NCBI GenBank assembly: GCA_004431415.1
Contig: QPMI01000142.1
Location: 52,335 to 116,334, forward strand
Direction: 5' to 3'
Source of the DNA: Cyanophora paradoxa CCMP329
Lineage: Eukaryota; Plantae; Glaucophyta
DNA: 64,000 nt
Numbering within the stretch: position 1 is the first letter of the stretch; each line of letters starts with the position of its first letter. Of the stretch, positions 48,699-64,000 are shown piece after piece. The notes under the pieces are model-generated. The model ran no database searches. It had not been told where the DNA came from and saw only the letters and a program-made list of their open reading frames with translations. A program made the translations under genes and the position numbers.

Positions 48699-50768
48699 TT
48701 CTAGATCTGCGACTCATTTTCGATTGTTCGCAATTCCATTCTTCTCCATCCAGCGGTCGTGATCATATTTCAGGCAAGCCACTTAGCTAGAACTTGTCTG
48801 ACTTTCAATCCAAACCTGGCATATATATGCATATTTACTTGCCTACGTATACTTGCCTGGCGAAAAGGGCTCCGGGGTCAGGCCGAGCTATTAGCGGCCC
48901 GGTGTTGAGAGGATGGGTTGAGTTAAGATTAAGGGGCGGTGCGGCCTTTAGCTTGAGCTTCAGCTGAGCTCAACTCCTCACTTCGCGGTCCTTTCTTGGC
49001 GGAAATTCGCTGGAAAATCAACGCCGCGTGCAAGCGCACAAGAATTGAATTTCATGCGCAGCTTTTTAGTTTCGTTTGAAATGTGGTAGCGGGCTGTCCG
49101 TCGGACCTCCGAGGCTCTGGCTTTCGAGTTTCGAATCGAGCTACAGAGTCGCCGAATGCGAACGCCGTGCGTTCGTTGCGTCGGCAGTACTCACTGTCGG
49201 CTGCGCAGTTTTAGCTCGGAAGCTATAATTCGCCGCGCTAATTAGATTACTAATTATGTTCCAATTGTCGCGATTTCGTGGCAGGCGTATATTCTGTTGT
49301 GCACGTGGCTGCATATTGCAATTTGCAAGAATTCGAATTCGAAGCTGAAGGAGGAGCTGCGGAGCTGCGGAATGATAAGGCTGAACTCCATGCTACGGTG
49401 CCTTAATCAGGATTCCTGACACTCCGTTGCATCAGACCCGTTTCAAATCACTTTTCTTTTGATCGGGTCCGGCTCCGATGAACTCGAGATCGCCTCTGAC
49501 CCTGGAAAGGTGCGCCGCGCGCTCACGCATTTATGTCAGGGGCTCACGCGTCAGAAAAGCTTCACGGAGGCGCTGGGCCCCGTGTCGCACTCGTAGCTAT
49601 AGCCCCGTACCCCCTCGCCCGCATACCTGAAAGTATTGCCGTCAGCGGGGCGCACGGGGCGCCGTGGGCGCGGGAGGGGCTGGAGGTTGGCGTCGTGGCC
49701 GGCGTCCGGGACGGCCTCGAAGCTCTCGAGAATCGGAGGCCCCCCGGGGGCAGAGGGACCGCGCGGCAATTGCAAGGTTCGAGCGGCCTCCCCAAGGCCC
49801 GCCGCTCACAGGCGAGTCAAATGCCGACTTGGCGACGCCTTGGCGACGCTGCTTGGACGGCCCCGCCGATGGCGGCTCGACGCGCGGGACGGGCCGGGTC
49901 AAGGCGGGCGGCAGCGGCGGCGGCGTCTGCGTCGGGATGCGAGGGGGAGAGGAGGCGGGTGGCGGCGACGACGCCGGGTGGCTCAGTGGCGCGCGGCCGG
50001 GCTGGCGACGGTGGGCGGGCGTCGGGGCGCCAGCCCGGAGGCCCAGCCCGGAGGCCCGGAGGCCGGTTCGAATCTCCACCGCGCCGGTTCGTTATCGGTG
50101 GAGCCGCTCTGCCAGGCCCGCGCCATCGCCATTGATCGACACGCTCCGGGGCTCCTCCTCAATTGCCTCTTCGCCCATCCCCGGCCCCTCTGCGAGATCC
50201 ACTTGCCCCCGTACGAGGTCCCCCCGGATCCTCACCGGCGCAGGGGTATAGCGCGCCTGCTGGCTTCCCACTTCCGTGCACCGCACCCCTTCCTCCCGCC
50301 CGGCCTCCCCCCCCCCCCTTTCCTCCCTCCCTCCGATTCCGCCTCGCGATCGTAGTGCACGTGGGCACGGCTGCCGGCTGGGCGGCGTGCTGCTGTGCAC
50401 GCTCGGTGCGTATTTCGTTCATCTCGCTCGCTACCCGCTTGGCAGGGCCGCACTCGTGACGGAATGCGACAGGGAGGCGCGGGTGGAGGCGCGGGCAGCG
50501 CGCCTCTCGCACTTCGCGGGCGGCCCCGCGGGGGGCAGGACGATGGGTACCTCCTCCGGGCGTACCGGGCGGCTCGAACAGGGTGCAGGACGATGGGTGC
50601 AGGACATCGGGGGGTACCGGGCAATCTCGAACGGTCTCCTCCGGCGGCACGCAGGGTCCGACGTTCAGCGGGCCGGGGCGGCCGCATCTTCGGGAGGACG
50701 AGGGGATCGGGGCGCTCCATAGTGTGGCTCCCGCGGCCGCCACCTCCTCCTCCTCTCCCCTTCACCTC

Positions 50769-51495
50769 CTCCGGTGCTCACGCCCCGCGCCTGGCCATGG
50801 GGGCCCCCGCGGCTCGGCCCGCGGAGGCTCTTGGGCGGGCGCGGCGAGGCGCCGCAGGACCTCGTTGGCCGTCTCAGAGTCTTCGTGACGCCGACTGTCT
50901 TCGGGTACGAGTGGTCGCCCTCGTTTGACGGCGTTCACAGCGCGCCGAAACACCGCAGGCGACGAACCGGTTGTCTTGCTGCCCGGAGGCGAGGCCCGTG
51001 AGGAGGAGCGGCTCCCACGCGGCCGGCCGCGGCCCCGCTTCGGCGCGGCGGCCACCTCCTCCGCCGCCACCGCCTCTTCCATCGCCTTCGCCACCGGCAC
51101 GGCCGCCAGCGCTAGCACCGGCACCGCCGCGGGCGGCGGCTCCCTCGGCGTGAGCTGCAGCGCCCCGCGGTGCGCCTCGCGGGGGCGGGTCGCGTGGCGG
51201 CGGCCGCTCCGGTGCTCACGCCCCGCGCCTGGCCATGGGGGCCCCCGCGGCTCGGCCCGCGGAGGCTCTTGGGCGGGCGCGGCGAGGCGCCGCAGGACCT
51301 CGTTGGCCGTCTCAGAGTCTTCGTGACGCCGACTGTCTTCGGGTACGAGTGGTCGCCCTCGTTTGACGCCGTTCACAGCGCGCCGAAACACCGCAGGCGA
51401 CGAACCGGTTGTCTTGCTGCCCGGAGGCGAGGCCCGTGAGGAGGAGCGGCTCCCGCGCGGCCGGCCGCGGCCCCGCTTCGGCGCGGCGGCCACCT
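50769..51495. repeat. 438-bp tandem duplication; unit 2 starts at 51207 and resumes at 54247-~54414 after element B
   Basis: Near-identical sequence offset by 438 nt (146 codons). Confidence 0.9.
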
Positions 51496-51501
51496 TTTTT
51501 T

Positions 51502-51757
51502 GCAAAAGTGGACGTCGCATTAAGAACACCACGGCACATGTCCTAATGTCCTGATCGACGCGCCCTTCCGACGCGGTCGACTAGCTAAGAGTAGGCGATG
51601 GTCTAGCTAGTCGCCGGCCTTGGGTCGTCCAGTTCAAGAGGCTCGCTTGCCCAGGGGACACACGGCTTGCAGATGCGCTGCTGCACCGTGGCCAACGCGC
51701 CCGGGTTTGTGAGTGGTTCCATCCCGTTGTGAACCCTGGTAGAGCTTGGCTCCGCAC
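51502..51757 (-). ncRNA. conserved structured 3'-terminal RNA module (element B version)
   Basis: Shares ordered islands with A (CCAGGG, GGGATGGA, GGGCGCGT, CGACCCA.GGCCGGC, GTCGGAAGGGC, ACATGTGCCGTGGTGT, AATGCGACGTCCACTTTTGC); the intervening stems covary. Confidence 0.6.
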
Positions 51758-52536
51758 TTGCAAAAGTGTAAGTGTAGGCGGTGATGGGGGACGATCGCTG
51801 CCGCCTGTCGTACGTGATCGCCGTCCCCAGCAGAGAAGAGGTGGGGCCCTCCAGGCTCGGCTCCTCTGCAGTCCGTCGTCGTACCCGCCCCAGTACGAAC
51901 GGCCGGGGTCCACATGAGAGAGCTGCCCGGTCCACCCCTCTCCGCCCCCCCCCTCCCCCCCCCGAAATTAGGTCCCAACGGAGGGTACGAGGGAGAGCCG
52001 CTCCTGCCCGCCTGCCCCCCCCCCTACCCCGCCCTCCTACCCCCCCCCCCAAGAGAGAGCAAGGTTGTGAGGGTGAGAAGGTAGAATAGTGGAGGCCAAT
52101 AAAGAGAGTGTGGAAAGAAAAACAGAGCTGTCGAAGAGCTGTCGAGTTTCGAGATATCTGTCAAAAAGTGAAGTTCGCGCTCCGGACGCCGTTTACCTCA
52201 AGCTGAAAATACCTCAAGCTGTTAAAATGCACTGCAAAGAAGGGGATCGGAAGCGAGCGTACTGCTGCAAGGGAAAACTGCAGGGATCGTCGAAAAAACC
52301 AAAAGCACATGCACATGCATTGAAAACGCTGTCACAGGGGACAGGCTAAAATGGGAGACTGTCACATTAACTTGAGAGCTGCCCAAAGGAGAGAGAAAAA
52401 TTACTGAGTGGCTGAGGGGAGAGAGGAGGGAGAGGGACGGGGGAGTGGCCGACGGCGGGAGAAACCCCTAAAGGAAATTGAGAGGGGGCGGAAAAAACTG
52501 CCGCTGCGTCAGGGGGAAGAGAGGAAAAGGGGCAGC

Positions 52537-54169
52537 CTAGCGCTTGGCCTTGCCCTTGCCCTTCGCCTTTGCGAGAGCCGGGGCGAGGGCCGCAGCGAGG
52601 GCCGCCGCGGTCAGGGGCGGCGAGGGCTCGGCGGGGCGGGCGAGGGCGGCAAGGATCGCCTGGGCGTCGGCGGAGAGGCCGCTGCCGCGGCTGGCCGCGC
52701 GGTTCTTCTTGAGGAGGCGGCGGAGGAGCTGCTCCACGTCCTCGTCCGAGTCGGAGCCGCGGCGCGGCGACTGGGAGCGGGAGCGGGAGCGCTGGCGGCG
52801 GCGGCCGCTGGAGGAGCTGCCGCCGGCGCCCGCATCGCGCTCGAAGAGGTTGGTGTGGTGGCTGGCGTGGGAGGCGAGGCTGACCGAGTCGTCCTCTGCG
52901 AGCTCGCGCCGCATGCGGCCGATGGCGGCGGCGAGCTCCTGGGGGCCGGGGAGGGCGCCCGGGGCCGCGGGCGGGGCGGCGGCGGCGGCGCCAGCGGCGG
53001 GCTCATCGAAGTGGGCGGCGCCGAGGGCGGCGGCGGCGGCCTCCGCGCCGTCCGCGGCCTCCTCGCGCGCACGCCCGTTGGCCATGCAGTTGAAGGTGTC
53101 GGGGTGGGCCCAGGCGTCCGTGGTGAGGTGTCCGCGCAGCGGGCAAGATAAGGAAGGAGGAGGGCGGGCGCCAGAAGTGCGCACGTGCGTGCAGAAGCAA
53201 CCGCCGTTGCCGTTTTCGTCGGCGCCGAGAGGCTCGTAAAGCGCCGCATCGACGTTGCGCGCTGCGTCGAAGTGCTTGAGCCACCGCCCGCGGTGCTCGC
53301 CCTTCGGGTGCAGCACGAGCTGCCCCGAAACGATTGTGAAGTCCGCCTCGGTGTAGTAGACACGGTAGGCGTTTGGGACGGTGCCGTTCATCCGCTGCTT
53401 GTTGGCAAGGCGGATGTGGTGCGGCGGCGCCAGAGTCACGACCGAACGGAGCGCCTCGCGGACCTTCGAGGAGAGGAGAAATGAGAGGAGAAGAAGAGAC
53501 ATTTATAATTAAGAGTTCGCAAACCGTGGCCTCCGTAAGCGGGCGGCCATTGGCAGTCTGCACGCCGAGGAGAAGGAACTTGGTCGGCATGCCGCCCGGC
53601 AGGGAGCGCGCGACCGCCACGTCGAAAGCGGACAGGAGGTGGCGCTTGTACACCAGAGCGTGGTCACGCGACGCCTGCTCCAGCATGCGCGCAAACTGGC
53701 ACGCGGAAGCGTGTTAGGGTGCGCTCAGGCGGCGAGAGTGTGCGCGCAATGCGCACGTGGAGATCGACGCAGACGAACAGCTTCGTGTGCGTGAAGGGAC
53801 GAGAGGGTGGAAGGAGTCCTTCATCACGAAGGCGCAGATGTTGGAGGACTGCTGGACAGAAGGCACCGCGATCTCCGCCGCGGCAGGGTCCTCAGCAGGC
53901 TCTCCGGCAAAGGGATTGCCGTCGAAAGCTGGCGCTCCTTGCTGCATCGGCTCGTCGCCCCAACGAGCTCCGATCGCGACCGGAGCAGCGCCCGCGGCCG
54001 CTGCAGCAGCTCCAGCGAGATTCGGGTGCGGTGCCGGAGCCAACGGTTGTGCGTTGGCCGGCGCCGGCCCGCCCGGCAGCTGGGTGAGAGGTCAGGAAAT
54101 TTTTTCGGTCGAATTTTCGGCCGGCGCGCGGCAGCGTACCGCTAGGAGACCAGAAGGAGGAGGCTCCAT
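52537..54169 (-). CDS. spliced ORF1/Gag-like protein of element B (~480 aa; RRM-like segment, Cys/His motif, RS-rich and basic tail)
   Basis: ATG at 54169; GT-AG introns 54139-54080, 53756-53696 and 53524-53464; one +1 correction is needed in a C-run near 53810. KFLLLGVQTANGRPLTEAT|VREALRSVVTLAPPHHIRLA...NAYRVYY is RRM-like; FCTH...CPLRGH...C follows. Confidence 0.65.
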
Positions 54170-54542
54170 GGCCTGGCGCGTGTCGGGAGAGCGTTGGGCC
54201 GCAGATGCGGAAGGGTTGGATCTTTCCAGGGGGGTACGGAAAGTCCCGGCGCGGCGGCCACCTCCTCCGCCGCCACCGCCTCTTCCATCGCCTTCGCCAC
54301 CGGCACGGCCGCCAGCGCGAGCACCGGCACCGCCGCGGGCGGCGGCTCCCTTGGCATGAGCTGCAGCGCCCCGCGGTGCGCCTTGCGGGGGCGGGTCGCG
54401 TGGCGGCGGCCGCCGCACTCCACCACCTCCTCCTCCCCATCGCTCCGGCCGCGCAACGCCGGCCGCTGGGTTTGCGCGGCAAGCAGCGGTGCCGCCCCTC
54501 GCCCCTCGTGGCACCAGCGGCCCTCGGCCTGGGCAAGCTTTT

Positions 54543-54919
54543 CACCTCGACAAAACGGGACACCGATTAATCGGGGTCCTGGGGCGCAGGTGAGGAGGAG
54601 GGAGGAGGCGGAGTGGGGAGGAGGAGGCGTGGCGGAGCGGCGGCAAGGGAGGGCGGCGGACTGCGAGACATCTCACTTCCAGGGCTCATGAGGGATGGAG
54701 GAGTTGATCAAGGGGTGGGCGCGTGGGTCTGGTTACGGCTATCACCGAAAACCATGGCTCCCCCACTCAGGCGAACCTCCCATATTGAGCGACCCATGGC
54801 CGGCACCTAGCTAGCACCATCGGCTAGATAGATGACCGGTCGGAAGGGCACGTCACGTAGAACATTGATACATGTGCCGTGGTGTATCAATGCGACGTCC
54901 ACTTTTGCAAAAAAAAAAA
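54543..54919 (+). mobile_element. 5'-truncated copy (A') of LINE element A
   Basis: Near-identical to the reverse complement of 56855-57232; A11 tail; 17-19-bp TSD TCGGCCTGGGCAAGCTT(TT) at 54524-54542 and 54920-54938. Confidence 0.93.
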
Positions 54920-56866
54920 TCGGCCTGGGCAAGCTTTTGCAGTCCTCGCCGTCGTCGGAACCCCCGCCGCCACCAGGGCACCGCCCCGCGCTTCGATCGC
55001 GGCGTCTGCGGCCCCCCGCCTGCCTCCCGACTCGCTCCCTCCCCCGTCATCGTCGCCAGTCCCCCCCTCCCGATCGCTCGCGACTCGTCCCCCCCTTCCT
55101 CCCCCTCCCCCTCCTCCTCGTCAGTCTCAACGTGCTCGGCCCGCTTGGGCCCCTCCAAGGACGCCCGCCCGGGCCCCTCCAGCGCCCGGATCGCCGGCCC
55201 CTCGTGCGCATGCTCGGCAGCGGCGCGCTCCAGGCACGCCAGCGCCGCGCGTGCCTGCGCGGCGGAGCGTCAGAGGCGCGCGGGGTGGGTGCACGCTGCG
55301 GTGGGGGCGGAGGCCGGGTGGGCGGCGCGCCTCGCGCTGCGTCCTGTGGCAGCCGTGCATCGTAGCGGTCCTCGGCGTGTGCTGGGGGAGCTGCTCCGTC
55401 CCCTTGATGCGCTGGCGGCGGCCGCGGCGTCTCGCTCGATCCGGGGATATCGATCCGCCCCGGCCCTTGCAATTGGCCGCCTGGTCGCGCACCCAGGTCG
55501 ACGCCACGGCGCGCATCGTCCGCGGCGGCATTGGCAAGCCCGTTCAGCGGCAGAAGCTTAAGGCCTCCGCTTCGCCCGCCCCCGGTCGCTTTCTACCGCC
55601 CCTCGACCGCGCGCTGCTCGGCCCGTCCTGGATCCGCATGCCATGATGCTCACTGAGTCAGGATCGACATGGGGAGGCCGCGCCGCGCCGGGCTGGTCGA
55701 GAAGAAGCTGAGGAGGAGGCAGTCCCGCAGGTGCTTCGCCTTTTGCCACGGCTTCTCCTCCGCGCCCCCCCTCAGGGCCTGAGCACGCGCTCGAACTCAT
55801 CGCAGCTCGTCCGCTGCCGCAGTGCCGCCACGTCTTCTCCGTCTTTGACTCATGATCAGCGACGAGCTGGTTCGTACGTTCGTTGCTGAAAGAGGCTGGG
55901 CAATGGGTCGTGAGTAGAAGAGCTCGTTTCCAAAAACGGTTTGATTTTGTCTGTGATCGCAATTCTGCGCAGTGCACGGTGCGTGTCCGACGGTCGCCCC
56001 AGGCGCCGCGGGCCCGCCGGGCCGGCAAGGGCCGGCGGGCATGCGCAGGCGCGCCTCTTGCTTGAGGCCGGCAACGATGCCAACCCGCAGCTTCTGTGCG
56101 AGGTTCTCGATGAGATTGCTACGGCCGCCGGCCACAATCTCACGGGCACGACGCTGCCCAGCGGCGCATCGTGGGCTGCCCTAGCCTAGTAGGCCTTAAC
56201 GTCGCCGTGACGATTTGGGCTGCGGCCGTGCCTCGCCCCCGCCGCCGGCCGCCGGCCCATGGCGCGCTGGCCATGGAGCTGCCGCAGTGCGGCCGGGGCT
56301 GCCGCCGGGCTGGCCGCTGTGTCTCTCCGGTGGGTATTTGGCGTTCTCCGCTGGGCGGCGGCGGCGGCCGTGGGGCGGAACAGCGCCGACCCTGCCCCGA
56401 GGCCCGAGGAGGTCGAGCTCGCCCTCGCTCAGGGCGTATGGCTGCCGCGACGTCGCCGAGTCGACTCGGAGCCGGCGGCGGGGGGCGGGGCGGCCTTCGA
56501 ATTATGCACGGCCAACGCCACTGGACCACCGGCACGGGCAGCGAGGGGGCCCAGCTACCTTTAATTTGGAAAGGCGGGCGAGGCGGCTCGGTCAATTAAT
56601 ATTGGCGTGAGCGGGCGCCCGTCGGCGTCGCAGGGGGCCCCTATCCGAGGCTCGCGCCGATGTAGCCCATTAGCGCACCTCTGCGCCAATACCCTCTGCG
56701 CCACCTCTGCGCCGCGTTTCGACTCGGGAAGTGGACTATATTGCAACGAGGCCAGATTTAACCCGGCAAAACGACAGATTTAACCCGGCTAACGGCAGAT
56801 CTATAGCTATATAGCTAGCCTAGAACTAACGCTAGCTATAGCTAGCGTCGAGCATTTTTTTTTTTT

Positions 56867-57114
56867 GCAAAAGTGGACGTCGCATTGATACACCACGGCA
56901 CATGTATCAATGTTCTACGTGACGTGCCCTTCCGACCGGTCATCTGTCTAGCCGAAGACGCTAGCAAGGTGCCGGCCATGGGTCGCTCAATATGGGAGGT
57001 TCGCCTGAGTGGGGGAGCCATGGTTTTCGGTGATAGCCGTAACCAGACCCGCGCGCCCACCCCTTGATCAACTCCTCCATCCCTCATGAGCCCTGGAAGT
57101 GAAATGTCTCGCAG
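56867..57114 (-). ncRNA. conserved structured 3'-terminal RNA module (element A version; also at 54661-54908 on +)
   Basis: Hairpins CATTGATACA/TGTATCAATG, CTAGC/GCTAG and TGAC/GTCA; several A versus A' differences cluster in the CTAGC/GCTAG loop. Confidence 0.6.
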
Positions 57115-60100
57115 TCCGCCGCCCTCCCTTGCCGCCGCTCCGCCACCCCTCCTCCTCCTCACTCTGCCTCCTCCCTCCTCCTCACCTGCGCCCCAGGACC
57201 CGATTAATCGGTGTCCCGTTCTGTCGAGGTGAAGAAGGTGGTAGGAGGAAGATATGAGGAAGGAGAGGGAGTGGGCGGAGGCAGCGGAGGGGTGGGCAGC
57301 GGATGCGGGGCAGGGCAGGGAGCGGTGCCGGGACGGCAGAGTGGAGTGAGCGTGGGCACTGACAGGCGGCGCAGAGAGCGGGGAGTGCGGAGACGAGGCG
57401 GGTCGCGAGGGGTCGGGAGGGTCGGTCTGAGTAGGGGGGTGGCCGAAGCCAGAGGGGTGGCCGAGGCCGATGGGGTGGCCGAAGCCGGGGGGGGCCGAAG
57501 CCGATGGGTGGCCGAAGCCGAGGGGGGGCCGAAGCCAGTGGGGGGCCGAAGCCATAGGGGTGGCCGGAGTCAACGAGGGGTTCGACACTTGTGAGTCGGT
57601 TGGGGCCGGGGGAGGGACCGTAGGGGGCGGCGGGGCGGCATCGTGCGGGGTCCCGGTCGGGGGGGCCGGCTGAAGCGAGGAGGGGGGGGGAGAGTCGGCT
57701 ACTGGAAGCGTCGTTAGTGGTTTGTACACTCCAGGTGCGAAGAGGGACGTGATTGTGGGTTGTGCAGCGGGTATCGACACCGTTCGCGCTTTTTTGGTTC
57801 CGCGCTTGGGGGTCTTGCGACCGGCTGCCTTTCTTTTCGCCGTAGGTACGGGTGGGGCGGGTGAAGAGGCGGGAAGGGGAGGGTCATGGGCGCGGGCGTT
57901 TGGGTGCCGGGGCGGGGGAGTATCGGTTGTCCGTTTGCGTGAGGCAGGCGACGGGCGAGTTCGTTTCGAGGGAGGGCCAGGGGGCGTTGGGGCGGGGCGC
58001 TTGGAAGGTTGAGTAGCGGACGTAGGGCCCGCGGGCAAAGCGGGCAGGGTGCCATTGTCGGGGTTCTTGTGGGAAGGTTGCGTTGGGGGTGCAGCAGGTT
58101 GGGAGGCAGATCTAGAGTATGAAGTGGTCTCAGGGCGAGCGGGGCACTTTCCCCGTCTGGCGTCGGAGTGGGCCTGGAGGGCAGCTGCGGAGGCAAATCG
58201 GGTGCCACAGGTGCAAGAGAAGTCAGATGTCATGGCTACGGTGCCGGCATTGGGCGGCTGGGGGAGGGGGGGCCTGGGGGAGGGGCGGTCTGGGGCGAGG
58301 GGAGGCAGGGAGTCGTGCAATTGCCTGGCGGAAATTTTCCAGGAGAACCCATGGTTGGCTTTCCGAGTCCAATCCGCAGCAGAAGTCAGTGATGGAGATG
58401 GTATCATGGAGGGAGGGGCGGGGGGGGCGGGGGGGGAGGGGGGGACCAGGCGGTTGTACTGGCGGCGAGCGGGAGGGTTTGGTGTCGGCATGTTTGCGGT
58501 ATCGACGTTTGGTTCTGTCAGTGATGCCTTGTCGGAGCTCCCAGGCGTGGTTGCGGGCGCAGCGGTCCCTCCAGATCGCACGGAGGTGTTGGTCGAGGAG
58601 TAGCGCTAAATCTTTTTGGATTGACATTGTGGTGGTTTTGTTGATGCCCAGGGCTGTGCAGAGGGCGGCAATCCTGCCGGGGTACCGAGGCGCAGGAGGC
58701 AGGGGCGGGGAAGGGGAGCATGTCAGCCAAGGCCGGGCTAAGCTTTGTCCATAGGGTATCGGTGAGACCTGGGGGGCGGAAAAGGGCCGGATTTTCGGTG
58801 GGGGAGAGGAGGGCGGATTGGAGGGGAGAGGCGGGGTCAGGGGAGACGAGGCGGAGGAAGGGAAAGAGTTGAAAAATAGTATCGTCGTGTCCTAAGGGTT
58901 TGGGCGAGTGGCGGAGAACCCGGGTGCGGAGGAAGGTCACGAGTGTGTCCTGGAGAGCTTGGAGGAGGAGGCGAGCGGCGGGGCAAGTAAATATGTGAAT
59001 GAAGTCTTCGGGGGGTGGGTTGTGGGTCGGGCTGTCTGGGGTCTGCGGCCCTCGGTGGGGAAGAGGGCGGGGGGAGCCCGGGGGGTGCACGTGGCAGGGG
59101 CGGGAGGGTGGGAGTGGGAAGCAGGGTCCTCGGGGACTGGGGCAGGGGTGGGAGGGAGGTGACAGAAGGGGCAGTGGGCGATACCGTCAGGAAAGAGAGG
59201 GCCGTATAGGTCGGGGTCGTGGAGGAGGCGGATGGTGAGGGAGGGAGGCCTCCAAGAATGCACTGGAATCTGACTTTGCGGAGGTGATCGCCTGTGGGGG
59301 TACGGCGGTCCGGTGGCTTGTCGGACACGAGGGAGAGGGCTGGGGCGAGGGTAACGTGAGGATTGCTGAGGACGGCCCCCGCGTTGCGAAGCTGGCGCCA
59401 GTCGAGGTATTGGGAGAGGAGGCTTCGGCTAGGAAGTGAGAGCGGGGGTCCCCTCAACGCGGTATGCATGGAGTCTGCCTCTGTAGGGCTCGGCTCCTGG
59501 AACTGGGCCTTGGGATGACGGGGCGGGAGGCCGACGCGGATGAGGAAGCATTTGAAACTGTGGGGAATGAAGAGAAGGGCTGAGAGGGGGGCGTCTGGGG
59601 TCGTTTTGGCAAGCTTGTCAACGGCGTCATTGTGGCAGTTGTCAGGAGTATAGGCTGGGTTCGGGATACGGTTCTTGGCCGGGGTCCGGGCCGCCTCTTT
59701 CTTTGCGACTGTTTTAGATGTTTTGGCGGACCGTGGTGGCGGCTGGGCGGCGTCGCGGTGGGCGGCTTCAGCTAGGATGGTCGCCGCCTCGAGTGGGGTC
59801 ACGTGGGACGGCCGGAAGAGACGGCGTGCTGTTGCGGAAGCTTCGTTGCGGGCCAGGTCAGCGAGCTGAGAGGCGAGTTCTTGGGCGTAGCGAGCACCGG
59901 GAGGGAGGGGGGTGGCGGGCCCTGCAGGGCGAGGCGGGGTAGACTCAAGCACAGTTGGGGAGCGCGGGAGGGCTGGGTGGTCGGGGGAGGATGGTGGGGA
60001 GTCTAGGGTAGGCAGGGTGCCGCCAGTGGAGACCGGGGGGCGGCGTGGCAGTTGGGGACGCCCCGGGAAGGTCGGTGGGGGCCTGAGGGCCGGGAGGGCA

Positions 60101-60139
60101 GGACCACAGCATATAGGGTCAAGGGTGACGGACCCGTAG

Positions 60140-60850
60140 CAGAGGCTGAGGGCAATATATTCACGGTATCTGCGGAGCGTTGCATTGTCGACCTGAATGT
60201 AGGCTGGGGGGCGGGGCAAGTCCGACGGGGCAAGTGCTGAGGAGCGACTGAGTAGGTCAGCTGTGAGGAGGAGGAGAGGGCCGCAGGCCGTGCTGTTGGG
60301 GGGCTGGAAAACGGAGAGGGATGTCTCCGGGCGTAAATAGGTCCATCTGCAGAATGGAGTGAGGGGGAGGGGGGAACCAGAGTCGCGGTGACTCCAAGTG
60401 GCCGCCAAGTCTTGTGCAAAGGAGACAAGGTGATCAGGGACGTCGAGGGAGCCGTTGTGAATGTAGAACGAGTGCGTCTGAGGAAATAAAGCGAGTAGGT
60501 GCCAGTGTCCCGGGGGGGCCTGAGGGTGCCGGGATCTGCCTGAGGGAAGGGTCGGCGAGGGGGCTGGTGGGGTATGATGAGTGGGGCGATAGGTAAGGAT
60601 GGGGACAAGGACAAGGCGGGCATCGAGAAGGCGTCCGGGGGGAAGGTATTGGTGCAGAGGGAGAAGGGCAGAGCCCCGAGAGTCAAATTGGGAGGCTGCA
60701 CTAGCGGGGTAGGAGCTGGACGACAGGAAGTAGGCAGGGTGAGGCGAGGCCAGGGCGGCTTCACGGGAGGAGAGCATGTCAAGGAAGGCTTCCACAAGGG
60801 GGAGGCTGAGGGCGGCATTCGGCCGGAGGTGGATAAGGTCGCCTCGTCGA
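60140..60850 (-). other. Ulp1/peptidase C48-like domain with catalytic His and Cys present
   Basis: DLIHLRPNAALSLPLVEAFLDML...AYFLSS...LVLVPI...GHWHLLAL...YIHNGS...QPPNSTACGPLLL...RRYREYIALSL. Confidence 0.75.
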
Positions 60851-61344
60851 ATGAGGGAGTGGCGATGAGGGTCAGGTCGGGGGGCGGGTGGGAGGGGGGG
60901 TTTCGACATGAGAGTTTGCTCCGCGCAGTAATCATTGTCTGCAAACCGGAAGGCATTCCCCAGCCAACTTTTCTCCGCCAGCGTCAGGGGGCGAGGGAGG
61001 GAAATTCAGTCGGGTGAGCGGGGGTTCGGCCTGGGGAAGCAGTTGGTCGGGCCTCGGGCGCCGGGGGCGTGGGGGTGGGAAGGCAGGGTGGGGGGGGGTG
61101 GGGGCTGCGGGGAGGAGGGAGGGGAATTGGGAGACCGGGGGGTTACCGGTGTAGGGACGGGGGGGAGAGGGAGGACGGAAGGGAGGAGGGGTGGGGTCTC
61201 GCTTGCGTCTGACCGGACGGCGGGCTTTGGCTGCCGTGTGCTGGGAGGGCGGGAGCTGGTGCGCGGGGTCATGCGCTGTCGTTTTGTTGTGAATGCCGGG
61301 TCGTTGGCCTGGACTGTCCCCAGGAGAACCTCAGGGTCCCGGAG

Positions 61345-61965
61345 AAGGAGAGCGGCCGCCCAACGCTCCCGGTAGATGGGGGCGTGGAAGGGGATAGGGC
61401 GGCCCCGTCCTTTGCCATACAGGTGGACTTCCTCACCGCGGCCAATGAACTCAGCAGCGGTCATGACGAAGAGAGCGTCTTCACCCGTGTGAACGTTTTT
61501 CCAGGCTTGTGTGGGGAAGGTGCTGGTGTCGTACTTCCAGGCCGAGCGTGGGGAGGGGTCGCCGGGGCGGAGAGTCGCCGTCCACCAGCTGATGACCCAG
61601 TCTTTAAGAGGGGCCGTGACGTCGGAGGCGGGTTTGCGGGTGACGTCCAGGATGCGGATTTCGCGGAGGCGGGCCGAGATGATTGCTAGTCGCCAGGGTC
61701 GGGACCCAGAGGGGGGCAGGGGGAGGAGAATATAATCGTATTCCGTTGGGGAGAAAGGGTGCGGGACGTAGGGTCGGTCCAGGTGTAGCTGGCCTGCACG
61801 GGCTTTGAGAGAAAGGGCAGTGGGGGCTGTGCCCAGGAGGATCGAGGTTGCGTGGGAGGACGAGAGGAAGAGGCACTTGGGGGTGGTCGGGGCATGCAGG
61901 CGGAAGGAGACTTGTCGGTTTTGGAGAAGTCTGAAGAAGGCGTCGACGGGTTCTGCAGGTATGGG
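61345..61965 (-). other. second Ulp1/C48-like domain, apparently inactive
   Basis: PVDAFFRLL...CLFLSS...DYILLPL...RPWRLAII...IRILDV...WKY...PTQ...EDALFVMTAAEFI...YRERWAAAL; the His and Cys positions are substituted. Confidence 0.6.
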
Positions 61966-64000
61966 TTGTGCGAGGAGAACGGGTGTGGCCAGGTGGGCCC
62001 CAGACCGGGGGTTGGGGTCGATGAGGGAGAGGGGGGCCGCTTTAAGGGCAGCCAGGCGAGATTTTATGCCGTCGAGGAGGGGAAGTACTCGGCGATCATA
62101 CCTGGGGCCGTCAGGGTCGATGGCAGCTGAGTAGGGATGGCTCGGCGTCCATAGCGTTCGAATAAAACAGGAAGGGCGCCGGTTTGGTCGCGGAAAGGGA
62201 ACGTGGGTGGGGGGCCAGGCGGGGCGGGGGTGGGGTGGCAGTGCGGGCAGGACAGGGCGGGTCCCCGTGCCCATTGTTCTGCGATCAGGGAGGAAATAGG
62301 GATGCCCCACATGCCAGGGTCGCAACGGTGGTACGCGACCAGAGGGGTGCCAGCCTCGGTCTGGGAGGTGGGGGCGAGTGTAAGATCCTCGTCCCAAAAC
62401 CAGGCGGGGAGAGGCGTGTCACGGTCGGCGGGGACAGCGGGTTTGCAGAGGGAAGTGGGGTAGAAATGCCAGGTGGGGCCGGAACCCCTAGGATGGGCTA
62501 AGTAATAGTCGAGGGCGAGTTTCCTTGTAGGCCCGGGATCAGGGTAGTCAACATCAGGGGCGTCCTCGGGGAGTGGTTGAAGGAAGATTGGGTTGGGAGG
62601 GGAGCAGCACTGGAAGGAGATGCTGTGAGTGATGTCTCTGCGTCCTAAGGCTTCAAGGAAAGCGGAGTAGGCGCGGAGGATGTCGCAGTCCGAGACAATA
62701 GTCAGGTGTTCGTCGGAAGGAAAAAGAGTATGATTTTTGGGGAGTCGGATGCAGCGGTTCCAGATGACGGTGTCCTCCGCCGTGAAGGCGCGTTCAAGTC
62801 TGGCGGACGCGAGGGGGACGAGGTCAAGGACCAGGTGGGTGTTGGTAGTCTCGGAGGCATCTACATAGTCAACGAGGTCCGCTTGGCATCGGAGGAAATT
62901 GTAGTCGGTGGGGCTGTCAGCTAGAATATATGTGCGGATGTGCCGGCGAGGCGGGAAGAGGGACGAGAATAGTGACGGGGGGAGGGGTGGGGAGGAGTCG
63001 TCCGAAAAAAGGAGTCGGGCATCGGGGATGTCCATTCCACCAATATAGTGGTAGGGGGCCGATGCAGAGAACGTCTGCGGGGCGGTAGGTAGGGGGGCAG
63101 CTGGTCCGCTGAGGGGGACACGGGGTCGGCGGGGGGAAGAGGGGGCCGGGCGGCGGGTCGTCGTTGGTGTCGGAGCCGTTGCAGGTGGCCGCGGGATGGT
63201 CTTTGGTTGGTGAGAGGGGACCCACTGAAGCGTGACTTGGAAGTTCGGTCTTGGGCGATACGAATGGCGTATTGCGTTCGAGCGTTGAGGAGAAGGGCCC
63301 GTCTTCTCGGCGGAGCAGGGTGCGGAAGTTAGGGATGGGAAAAGATGAAGGGTCTTGAAAGGCGAAGGCTGTCAGGGCTCGGATAGTGTCTGACTGTCCG
63401 TGATAATTTGCCCGCCCGTGGGCCCGAAATACGTGAATGCTGCGGAGATTGTGCCTGCTAGCTCTCCCAGGTTCACGTTGTGTTGGACGCCGGGGAGGCG
63501 TGGGCGAACTCGATTTTGTCAGGCAGGTCGGGATTATTTTCGAGGGTGCAAGGCCGGCGTAAGTGGTTCGGACGGAGGCGGAGCCCTGTTTTTGTGTGCT
63601 GGCGCCGTGTAGATTACCCGGGGAGTAGGTCCGGAGGGAAGGGCGGGGAGTTTAGTGCGCGGAGTGTAGGGCAGAGCTCTGCGAAAAGGGCTCGGGAGGT
63701 AATGAAAAGGAAGTCGAGCCCGGCCGGGGATTCATAGAAGTCGCGGTCGGCTTGTGATGCGGGGTCATAAGGCGTGGGCGTCTCTCGAGGCAACATTGGT
63801 AGCCTGGGCCTCCGCTCGGAAAGAGTCCCACCAGTCAGTTTCCCGGAGCCAGAGTCGATGAAGCCAATGTGTGTGATTTCGCGGGGGAGGTTGGGAGGGG
63901 GGAGTTCGGGGTCATATTGAGCAGGAGGGGTAGCTGAGGAGGGTCAAGGCGGGCTTTTTTAGCTGCTCGTGTGGGTTGAGCACGGGAGGGCTGCTGTCCT

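Follow-up and report, generated by a model that had tools for sequence, protein, structure and literature searches.

The 64,000-nucleotide stretch of Cyanophora paradoxa CCMP329 DNA analysed here (contig QPMI01000142.1, positions 52,335 to 116,334; hereafter the window, numbered from its first letter) contains a retroposed unit that carries an expressed, intron-containing gene. This unit, which we refer to as element B, occupies positions 51496–54246 (2,751 bp) and reads, together with all of its parts described below, on the minus strand. The host sequence surrounding it is a 438-bp tandem repeat, and comparison between repeat units defines the limits of the element. Host positions 51207–51495 match positions 50769–51057 at 99%, and positions 54247–54413 match positions 51041–51207 at 98%. 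The two matches overlap by 17 bp (51041–51057), a segment that occurs once in the intact repeat unit and on both sides of B, and B is therefore a single 2,751-bp insertion with a target-site duplication of 16–17 bp. The copy of the duplication on the 5′ side of B (54247–54263; 16 nt, or 17 with a leading A) is identical to the copy on the 3′ side (51479–51495) and to the paralogous empty site in the neighbouring repeat unit (51041–51057), which was recognized from the overlap of the repeat matches and their alignment. At its 3′ end B terminates in a short poly(A) of 6–7 residues (51496–51501), which directly follows a terminal motif described below. Both the poly(A) and the duplication had been proposed in the first-pass annotation of this stretch; the A run is there after the motif, and the intact repeat unit, acting as an empty site, bears out the duplication. 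The 3′ junction is also present in independent DNA data, in which a contig from sequencing run X1 spans positions 51466–51526 with zero differences. Apart from the tails discussed below, the 64-kb window holds no other B-like sequence. We note that the host repeat itself carries an open frame (50762–51532 and 54142–54456, minus strand), and that the public gene model tig00000555_g2151.t1 merges this frame with the gene in B and is thus a chimeric annotation.

The gene within B has four exons separated by three sense-strand GT-AG introns. Intron 1 (54080–54139) is 60 nt in length and contains CTGAC, intron 2 (53696–53756) is 61 nt in length and contains CTAAC, and intron 3 (53464–53524) is also 61 nt in length. 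In the published genome of C. paradoxa, which has a GC content of 67.6%, a mean of 9.2 introns per gene and 2.5% LINEs (long interspersed nuclear elements), the mean intron length is 86 bp (PMC6704402), so that introns of 60–61 nt are ordinary for this host. To compare RNA with DNA, contigs from three RNA-type runs (X15, X16 and X18, from two studies) and from the DNA run X1 were placed on positions 51300–54500. The RNA label of these three runs is a guess, which fits the clean removal of GT-AG intervals, the total contig size of about 31–33 Mb and the low depth over the flanks. Each of the three gave one contig of 1.4–2.0 kb that has zero differences from B and omits exactly the three introns. 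The intron 3 joint was placed at 53461/53523 in all three (a cut 2 nt further on fits the intron). None of the three splice joints was found in X1, where an unbroken contig over positions 52876–54249 keeps the introns. RNA depth was 0–5 over the introns compared with 68–99 over the exons; the intron level is no higher than that of the flanks, which indicates that splicing is efficient and that unspliced RNA is at background. The introns are thus removed from at least about 90% of the RNA of B while the DNA retains all three. The first-pass annotation had recognized these introns, including the motifs in the first two, and had suggested a search for RNA junctions at 54139/54080, 53756/53696 and 53524/53464; these are the same three intervals that are omitted in the RNA-type runs. 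Its further proposal that B was copied from unspliced RNA agrees with these results in that the insertion went through an intron-holding RNA, the DNA keeping introns that the mRNA loses. The base at position 54119, in intron 1, is G in the window and in the RNA-type runs but A in X1; the variant distinguishes either strains or copies of B.

The RNA contigs begin at positions 54243, 54232 and 54224, which is 3–22 nt inside the 5′ end of B, and RNA depth in the upstream flank is only 0–8 compared with 68–99 in the body of the element. The contig starts and the low flank depth together indicate that transcription begins at or beside the first base of B. Exon 1 and the transcription start region accordingly occupy positions 54140–54246, with the first ATG at 54169. 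At the other end, the contigs terminate at 52069, 52074 and 52097. The abundant mRNA therefore ends about 470 nt past the stop codon of the gene and about 570 nt short of the poly(A) of B, upstream of a G-rich spacer and of a LINE-type tail. The 3′ untranslated region of this mRNA (52069–52536) was delimited by the contig ends and shows no codon-position signal (GC 0.55/0.47/0.52). It is followed by a B-specific spacer with long runs of G (51751–52068). RNA depth is about 4 over positions 51621–52048, and the low-depth contigs found there differ from this copy of B. Several runs of 8–11 G lie at 51950–52055 (minus strand), past the point where the abundant mRNA ends and before the LINE-type tail; the DNA contigs vary in length in this region, with insertions of CCCC and CC. 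These G runs could form G-quadruplexes or act in 3′-end formation.

The LINE-type 3′ tail of B (51502–51750) was identified from alignments, BLASTN, a shared motif and a consensus fold. A 28-nt terminal motif precedes the A run of B and occurs three times in the window with no more than one mismatch, compared with zero occurrences in 100 shuffles. The remaining two occurrences are the ends of two elements that we designate A-type. The first of these, A′, is a 5′-truncated copy of 377 bp on the plus strand (54543–54919) with 11 A residues and a perfect 19-bp target-site duplication (54524–54542 and 54920–54938). The second, A, is a long element on the minus strand whose 12 terminal A residues lie at 56855–56866 and which extends beyond the window end (56855–64000). 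The tail of B aligns with those of A′ and A over about 250 nt, with BLASTN giving 77–80% identity across the last 132 nt and the remainder being weaker, whereas A′ and A agree at 95% over 367 nt of their tails. The homology of the last ~250 nt of B to the tail of A, and with it a shared 3′ structure, had been recognized in the first-pass annotation, and the alignment, BLASTN and motif results all agree with it; A′, moreover, has inserted in a like manner, with its 19-bp duplication and poly(A). A consensus fold of the three tails contains 76 pairs, eight of which are retained through two-sided changes between the A type and B; since just two independent lineages are compared, conservation of a folded structure is suggestive only. 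Searches with the tail motif found no match in metagenome contigs, and Rfam gave nothing above threshold on positions 51300–57400. A′ lies about 300 bp from B in the opposite orientation, so that three tail-bearing insertions are found inside 6 kb.

The A-type elements are probably LINEs, the basis for this assignment here being the signature of A′, which combines 5′ truncation, poly(A) and a target-site duplication. P0004 represents a second copy of A on another contig. The stop-free pieces of the visible 7 kb of A gave no Pfam match to reverse transcriptase, RNase H or C48 protease; the sole match was a weak C2H2 finger, near 58140–58220. The body of A at 58000–64000 is very strongly asymmetric between strands, with a GC skew of 0.37–0.43 on the plus strand, which makes its coding strand C-rich, and it contains proline-rich open frames in several phases together with numerous stop codons.

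Reading frames in B were derived from exon lengths and per-exon translations. The first-pass annotation had described one continuous open reading frame (ORF) across three introns, all at phase 0, and our results do not bear this out, since the frame breaks at intron 2. Exon 1 contributes 30 nt after the ATG at 54169, and exon 2 (53757–54079) is 323 nt in length, which puts intron 2 at phase 2 relative to that ATG. Read from 54169, the sequence is consequently in the wrong register on entering exon 3, and the frame closes after nine codons of exon 4, for a total of 183 codons. Both public gene models mend the frame by means of an 86-nt GT-AG intron (53781–53866) that is found in the models only: the RNA contigs are continuous over 53757–54079 without splicing there, and depth is flat in the 53761–53867 bin. 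This intron seems to have been invented by the gene models to hold the frame open. One of the models, P0001, also lacks a 48-nt stretch (53137–53184) that is unbroken in the RNA of this copy.

Codon composition points to a different frame. Exon 3 (53525–53695), in which the first in-frame ATG is at 53686–53684, has a GC content at third codon positions (GC3) of 0.86, and exon 4 (52537–53463), which is continuous in the RNA contigs and ends in a stop codon at 52537–52539, has a GC3 of 0.90 and a GC content at second positions (GC2) of 0.59. High GC3 with low GC2 is the pattern of coding sequence in this genome, and the best coding sequence is therefore that from ATG 53686 to the stop at 52537–52539. 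Exon 2, with a GC3 of just 0.60–0.68 over most of its length and a length that breaks the frame, is probably leader rather than coding. On this composition and frame arithmetic, the best-supported coding sequence is likely to be one of 362 codons, in which intron 3 would be at phase 0 and introns 1 and 2 would lie in a long leader.

The gene together with its untranslated regions and the tail fills all 2.75 kb of B, and no enzyme was detected within it. The exons were searched singly, with the gene models P0001 and P0003 as joined forms. Pfam and NCBIfam gave no family for the exons, reading-frame pieces or gene models of B, in the case of Pfam even at E values up to 10, and no reverse transcriptase or endonuclease, in line with the earlier statement that B lacks a reverse transcriptase. 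A HMMER search of 1.84 billion representatives found no relative of the B protein beyond its own cluster; the other entry listed was a 44-residue stretch of a 2,473-residue protein, which we take to be a low-complexity match. A word-index search likewise returned only its own cluster, and a search of the ESM Atlas found no neighbour. The C-terminal half of the protein is alanine- and proline-rich and then strongly basic with an Arg-Ser run. The first-pass annotation had suggested an ORF1-like protein and a structural comparison with the RNA-recognition motif (RRM) and zinc knuckle of L1 ORF1p. A single-sequence AlphaFold model was unusable, with a predicted local distance difference test (pLDDT) value of 39.8, and the searches revealed no family, no relative and no RRM; the translations of B contain no CCHC zinc knuckle. 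We also considered the LINE ORF1 types (L1 Transposase_22 with RRM and CTD, gag-like CCHC and esterase), and found no recognizable domain or motif of any of them in B. As judged from its sequence, the B protein is an orphan, with no signal that would favour an ORF1-like function. Nor does B appear to be an ORF1-only derivative of A, as had been proposed, since only its tail resembles the part of A inside the window.

A single lead came from a search of the PDB, which gave one match, to Psr of Streptococcus pneumoniae (a LytR-CpsA-Psr or LCP enzyme; PDB 9gn3), with an E value of 1.3e-4. The match holds an identical ten-residue run, NGRPLTEATV, across the exon 3/4 junction (53495–53560), and BLASTP widens it to 33/93 identities. 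Among 185,579 species genomes this run is nearly confined to mitis-group streptococci. The lead was also probed by tblastn against plasmids, and a search for diverse LCP proteins returned only relatives of at least 92% identity, so that no profile was made. The PF03816 and NCBIfam profiles for LCP proteins are silent on the B protein. In our view the Psr match is probably due to chance, and we retain it only as a lead.

The only database relatives of the B protein are two C. paradoxa EukProt models, tig00000555_g2151.t1 (P0003) and tig00000523_g1875.t1 (P0001). P0003 contains the flank of B in the window as well as B sequence, which places the window on contig tig00000555, and P0001, in which several residues differ, represents a second copy. 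Exact-product look-ups for P0001, for a 321-residue ORF and for the 362-residue product found none on record. A 1,660-nt contig of X1 contains the 5′ 1,374 nt of B with introns, followed by 286 nt unlike the flank of B in the window; its likeness to the window ends 3 nt beyond the first base of B. This contig is compatible with a second copy of B that shares this 5′ end but lies in different surroundings. Depth in X1 is 115–162 over the body of B, 209 over 51519–51944, 78 for the contig spanning the 3′ junction and about 5,000 over the tail at 51514–51620. These contig depths are not copy numbers and must be read loosely, but they suggest 2–3 copies of B and a far larger population of elements sharing the extreme tail. 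B may belong to a family that propagates itself, or it may be a host gene that acquired a LINE tail as a tag and of which one or two copies were then made.

Taken together, we lean slightly towards the view that B is a unit without reverse transcriptase, composed of an expressed three-intron orphan gene and a LINE-type 3′ module, which was inserted by target-primed reverse transcription with the enzyme of another element. The template would have been a rare unspliced transcript that continued past the normal 3′ end of the gene and on into the tail of LINE type, because only such an RNA bears the tag recognized by the LINE enzyme. This read-through RNA may stay nuclear and unspliced, splicing and 3′-end formation being coupled, and a LINE enzyme recognizing the tail would then reverse-transcribe it, beginning at the poly(A) and reaching the start site. 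The resulting copy would keep a working promoter: because the first bases of B are also where its transcription starts, and because B is transcribed amid near-silent flanks, the promoter is probably internal and recopying is possible.

Several observations weigh against this interpretation. Unspliced and read-through RNA are at background, and the supposed template is therefore not observed directly. The ends of a transcript cannot be proved from contigs, and assembly might break at the G runs at 51950–52055, though depth stays low beyond them. The reverse transcriptase of the partner is absent from the window, the visible 7 kb of A having no Pfam family but the weak C2H2 finger, and A itself may not be the mobilizer, given that the tail of B is just ~70–80% identical to that of A. 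In the main mRNA, the 183-codon frame, to which three upstream ATGs belong, overlaps the beginning of the 362-codon ORF, and this leaves translation of the ORF uncertain. Lastly, with only two gene models and a depth equivalent to roughly 2–3 copies, a family of independent insertions is no more than a possibility.

An explanation that we regard as possible, if on the unlikely side, treats B as the 3′ end of a larger LINE family that is autonomous and whose reverse transcriptase is followed by accessory genes with introns. On this view B would have been either copied with 5′ truncation or made from a subgenomic transcript initiated at the promoter of the accessory gene itself, the enzyme coming from the parent family. 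The greater X1 depth over the tail region at 51519–51944 than over the body of B hints at one more element with a B tail, and the upstream flank of the second copy, which is unlike that of B in the window, could be LINE sequence. However, the 5′ end of B lies within 3–22 nt of the RNA start in three runs, and random truncation would rarely be so placed, although a subgenomic RNA would be. In addition, the HMMER search found no paralogue of the B protein beyond its own cluster, and in the window no reverse transcriptase is joined to a B-type body. The bipartite system put forward in the first-pass annotation, in which A-type LINEs lack ORF1 and B supplies an ORF1-like RNA-binding protein so that the two are mutually dependent, is in our opinion very improbable. 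It would accommodate the shared tail and insertion style and the good expression of B, and the composition of the basic, Arg-Ser-rich C-terminal half of the B protein is such that it could bind RNA. Against this, the protein has no ORF1, RRM or zinc-knuckle similarity and the translation of its main ORF is doubtful. Furthermore, B has just ~2–3 copies, whereas depth across the final ~100 nt of the tail is higher by roughly 30-fold, which implies that most A-type elements spread without a matching number of B copies. It is less probable still that there was no retroposition at all, and that B arose by duplication or transposition at the DNA level or is an assembly artefact in the tandem repeat. 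The insertion does sit in a repeat array, where assemblies can err, but its junctions are exact and bear a 17-bp duplication, a run of A and a tail of the LINE type; the independent DNA run carries the 3′ junction without difference, and the adjacent A′ bears the same insertion signature.

A broader version of the interpretation that we favour can be formulated, in which the LINE machinery of C. paradoxa regularly copies unspliced nuclear read-through RNA, so that genes which acquire a tail are duplicated with their introns and an internal promoter, B being a self-propagating example. A single locus would then give two RNAs, a short spliced mRNA that serves expression and a rare unspliced one that bears the tail and serves copying. 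We put this forward tentatively and consider it unlikely. If true, genes could be duplicated through RNA without acquiring a 'processed' signature, and a LINE would be acting upstream of splicing.

Retroposition by LINEs is taught as the copying of mature, spliced RNA, and the loss of introns is the standard mark of a retrocopy. B provides one defined copy in which the RNA is efficiently spliced, the retroposed DNA is intron-bearing and the abundant mRNA lacks the tag for copying. The absence of the tail from the abundant mRNA, together with the introns in the DNA, points to a separate template, a rare unspliced read-through RNA. This makes it possible to test where in the cell, in the nucleus or in the cytoplasm, and on which RNAs the LINE enzyme of this alga acts. 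It also means that in such genomes intron-containing paralogues can be retrocopies, and that public gene models can join retrocopies to host genes or introduce false introns that hold a frame open, as both models of the gene in B show.

B shares features with several known kinds of retroposon. In general design it resembles the tail-sharing pairs of short interspersed nuclear elements (SINEs) and LINEs, and RIME/ingi in trypanosomes, in which LINE-dependent, non-autonomous retroposons carry the 3′ tail of the partner LINE. Like B, these lack a reverse transcriptase, are flanked by a target-site duplication and carry an A tail, and their LINE-homologous 3′ end is presumably the recognition tag. 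B differs from them in containing an expressed, spliced protein gene of the RNA polymerase II type with introns, in its low copy number (~2–3) and in having a tail that is 70–80% identical to that of A. HAL1 elements, which are ORF1-only deletion derivatives of mammalian L1 without introns, resemble B in being protein-coding, LINE-dependent retroposons lacking a reverse transcriptase. HAL1 retains a recognizable L1 ORF1, whereas the ORF and body of B have no detectable relation to the visible part of A or to any ORF1. A HAL1-type origin was set aside for B because only its tail resembles A, with the proviso that the 5′ part of A lies outside the window. In 5′ or 3′ transduction by L1 and in composites of the SVA type, read-through RNA joins non-LINE sequence to a LINE-recognized 3′ end and the two are copied together. 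In B, by comparison, LINE sequence is limited to ~250 nt of tail, and what has been carried along is an entire gene, unspliced and running from its start site.

Semi-processed retrogenes, such as mouse preproinsulin I and the TMF1 insertion in human CYBB (PMC4151081), are LINE-mediated cDNA copies of genes which, like B, retain introns and have a poly(A) and a target-site duplication. These keep only some of their introns and end at their own polyadenylation site, whereas B keeps all of its introns and has as its 3′ end a LINE-type tail, ~570 nt further on than the end of its mRNA; the 5′ end of B, moreover, coincides with its transcription start, and B is transcribed amid near-silent flanks. 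No distinct parent gene for B was identified in the word-index and HMMER protein searches. For Penelope-like elements, the retention of introns has been described as highly unusual among retroelements (PMC8557442, citing Arkhipova 2003, 2013), and introns of their 5′ leader overlap an internal promoter (PMC8557442). Intron retention is the only feature that these elements share with B. They have a telomerase-like reverse transcriptase, a GIY-YIG endonuclease and pseudo-LTRs (long terminal repeats), with no such poly(A) and duplication signature, while B has the insertion signature of an APE-type LINE and no enzyme; as none of the telomerase-like reverse transcriptase, GIY-YIG endonuclease or pseudo-LTR was found in B, we do not regard it as a Penelope-like element. 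B is a real and well documented example of an unspliced transcript of a gene having undergone retroposition of the LINE type, and its arrangement works in the manner both of tail-sharing non-autonomous retroposons and of semi-processed retrogenes.

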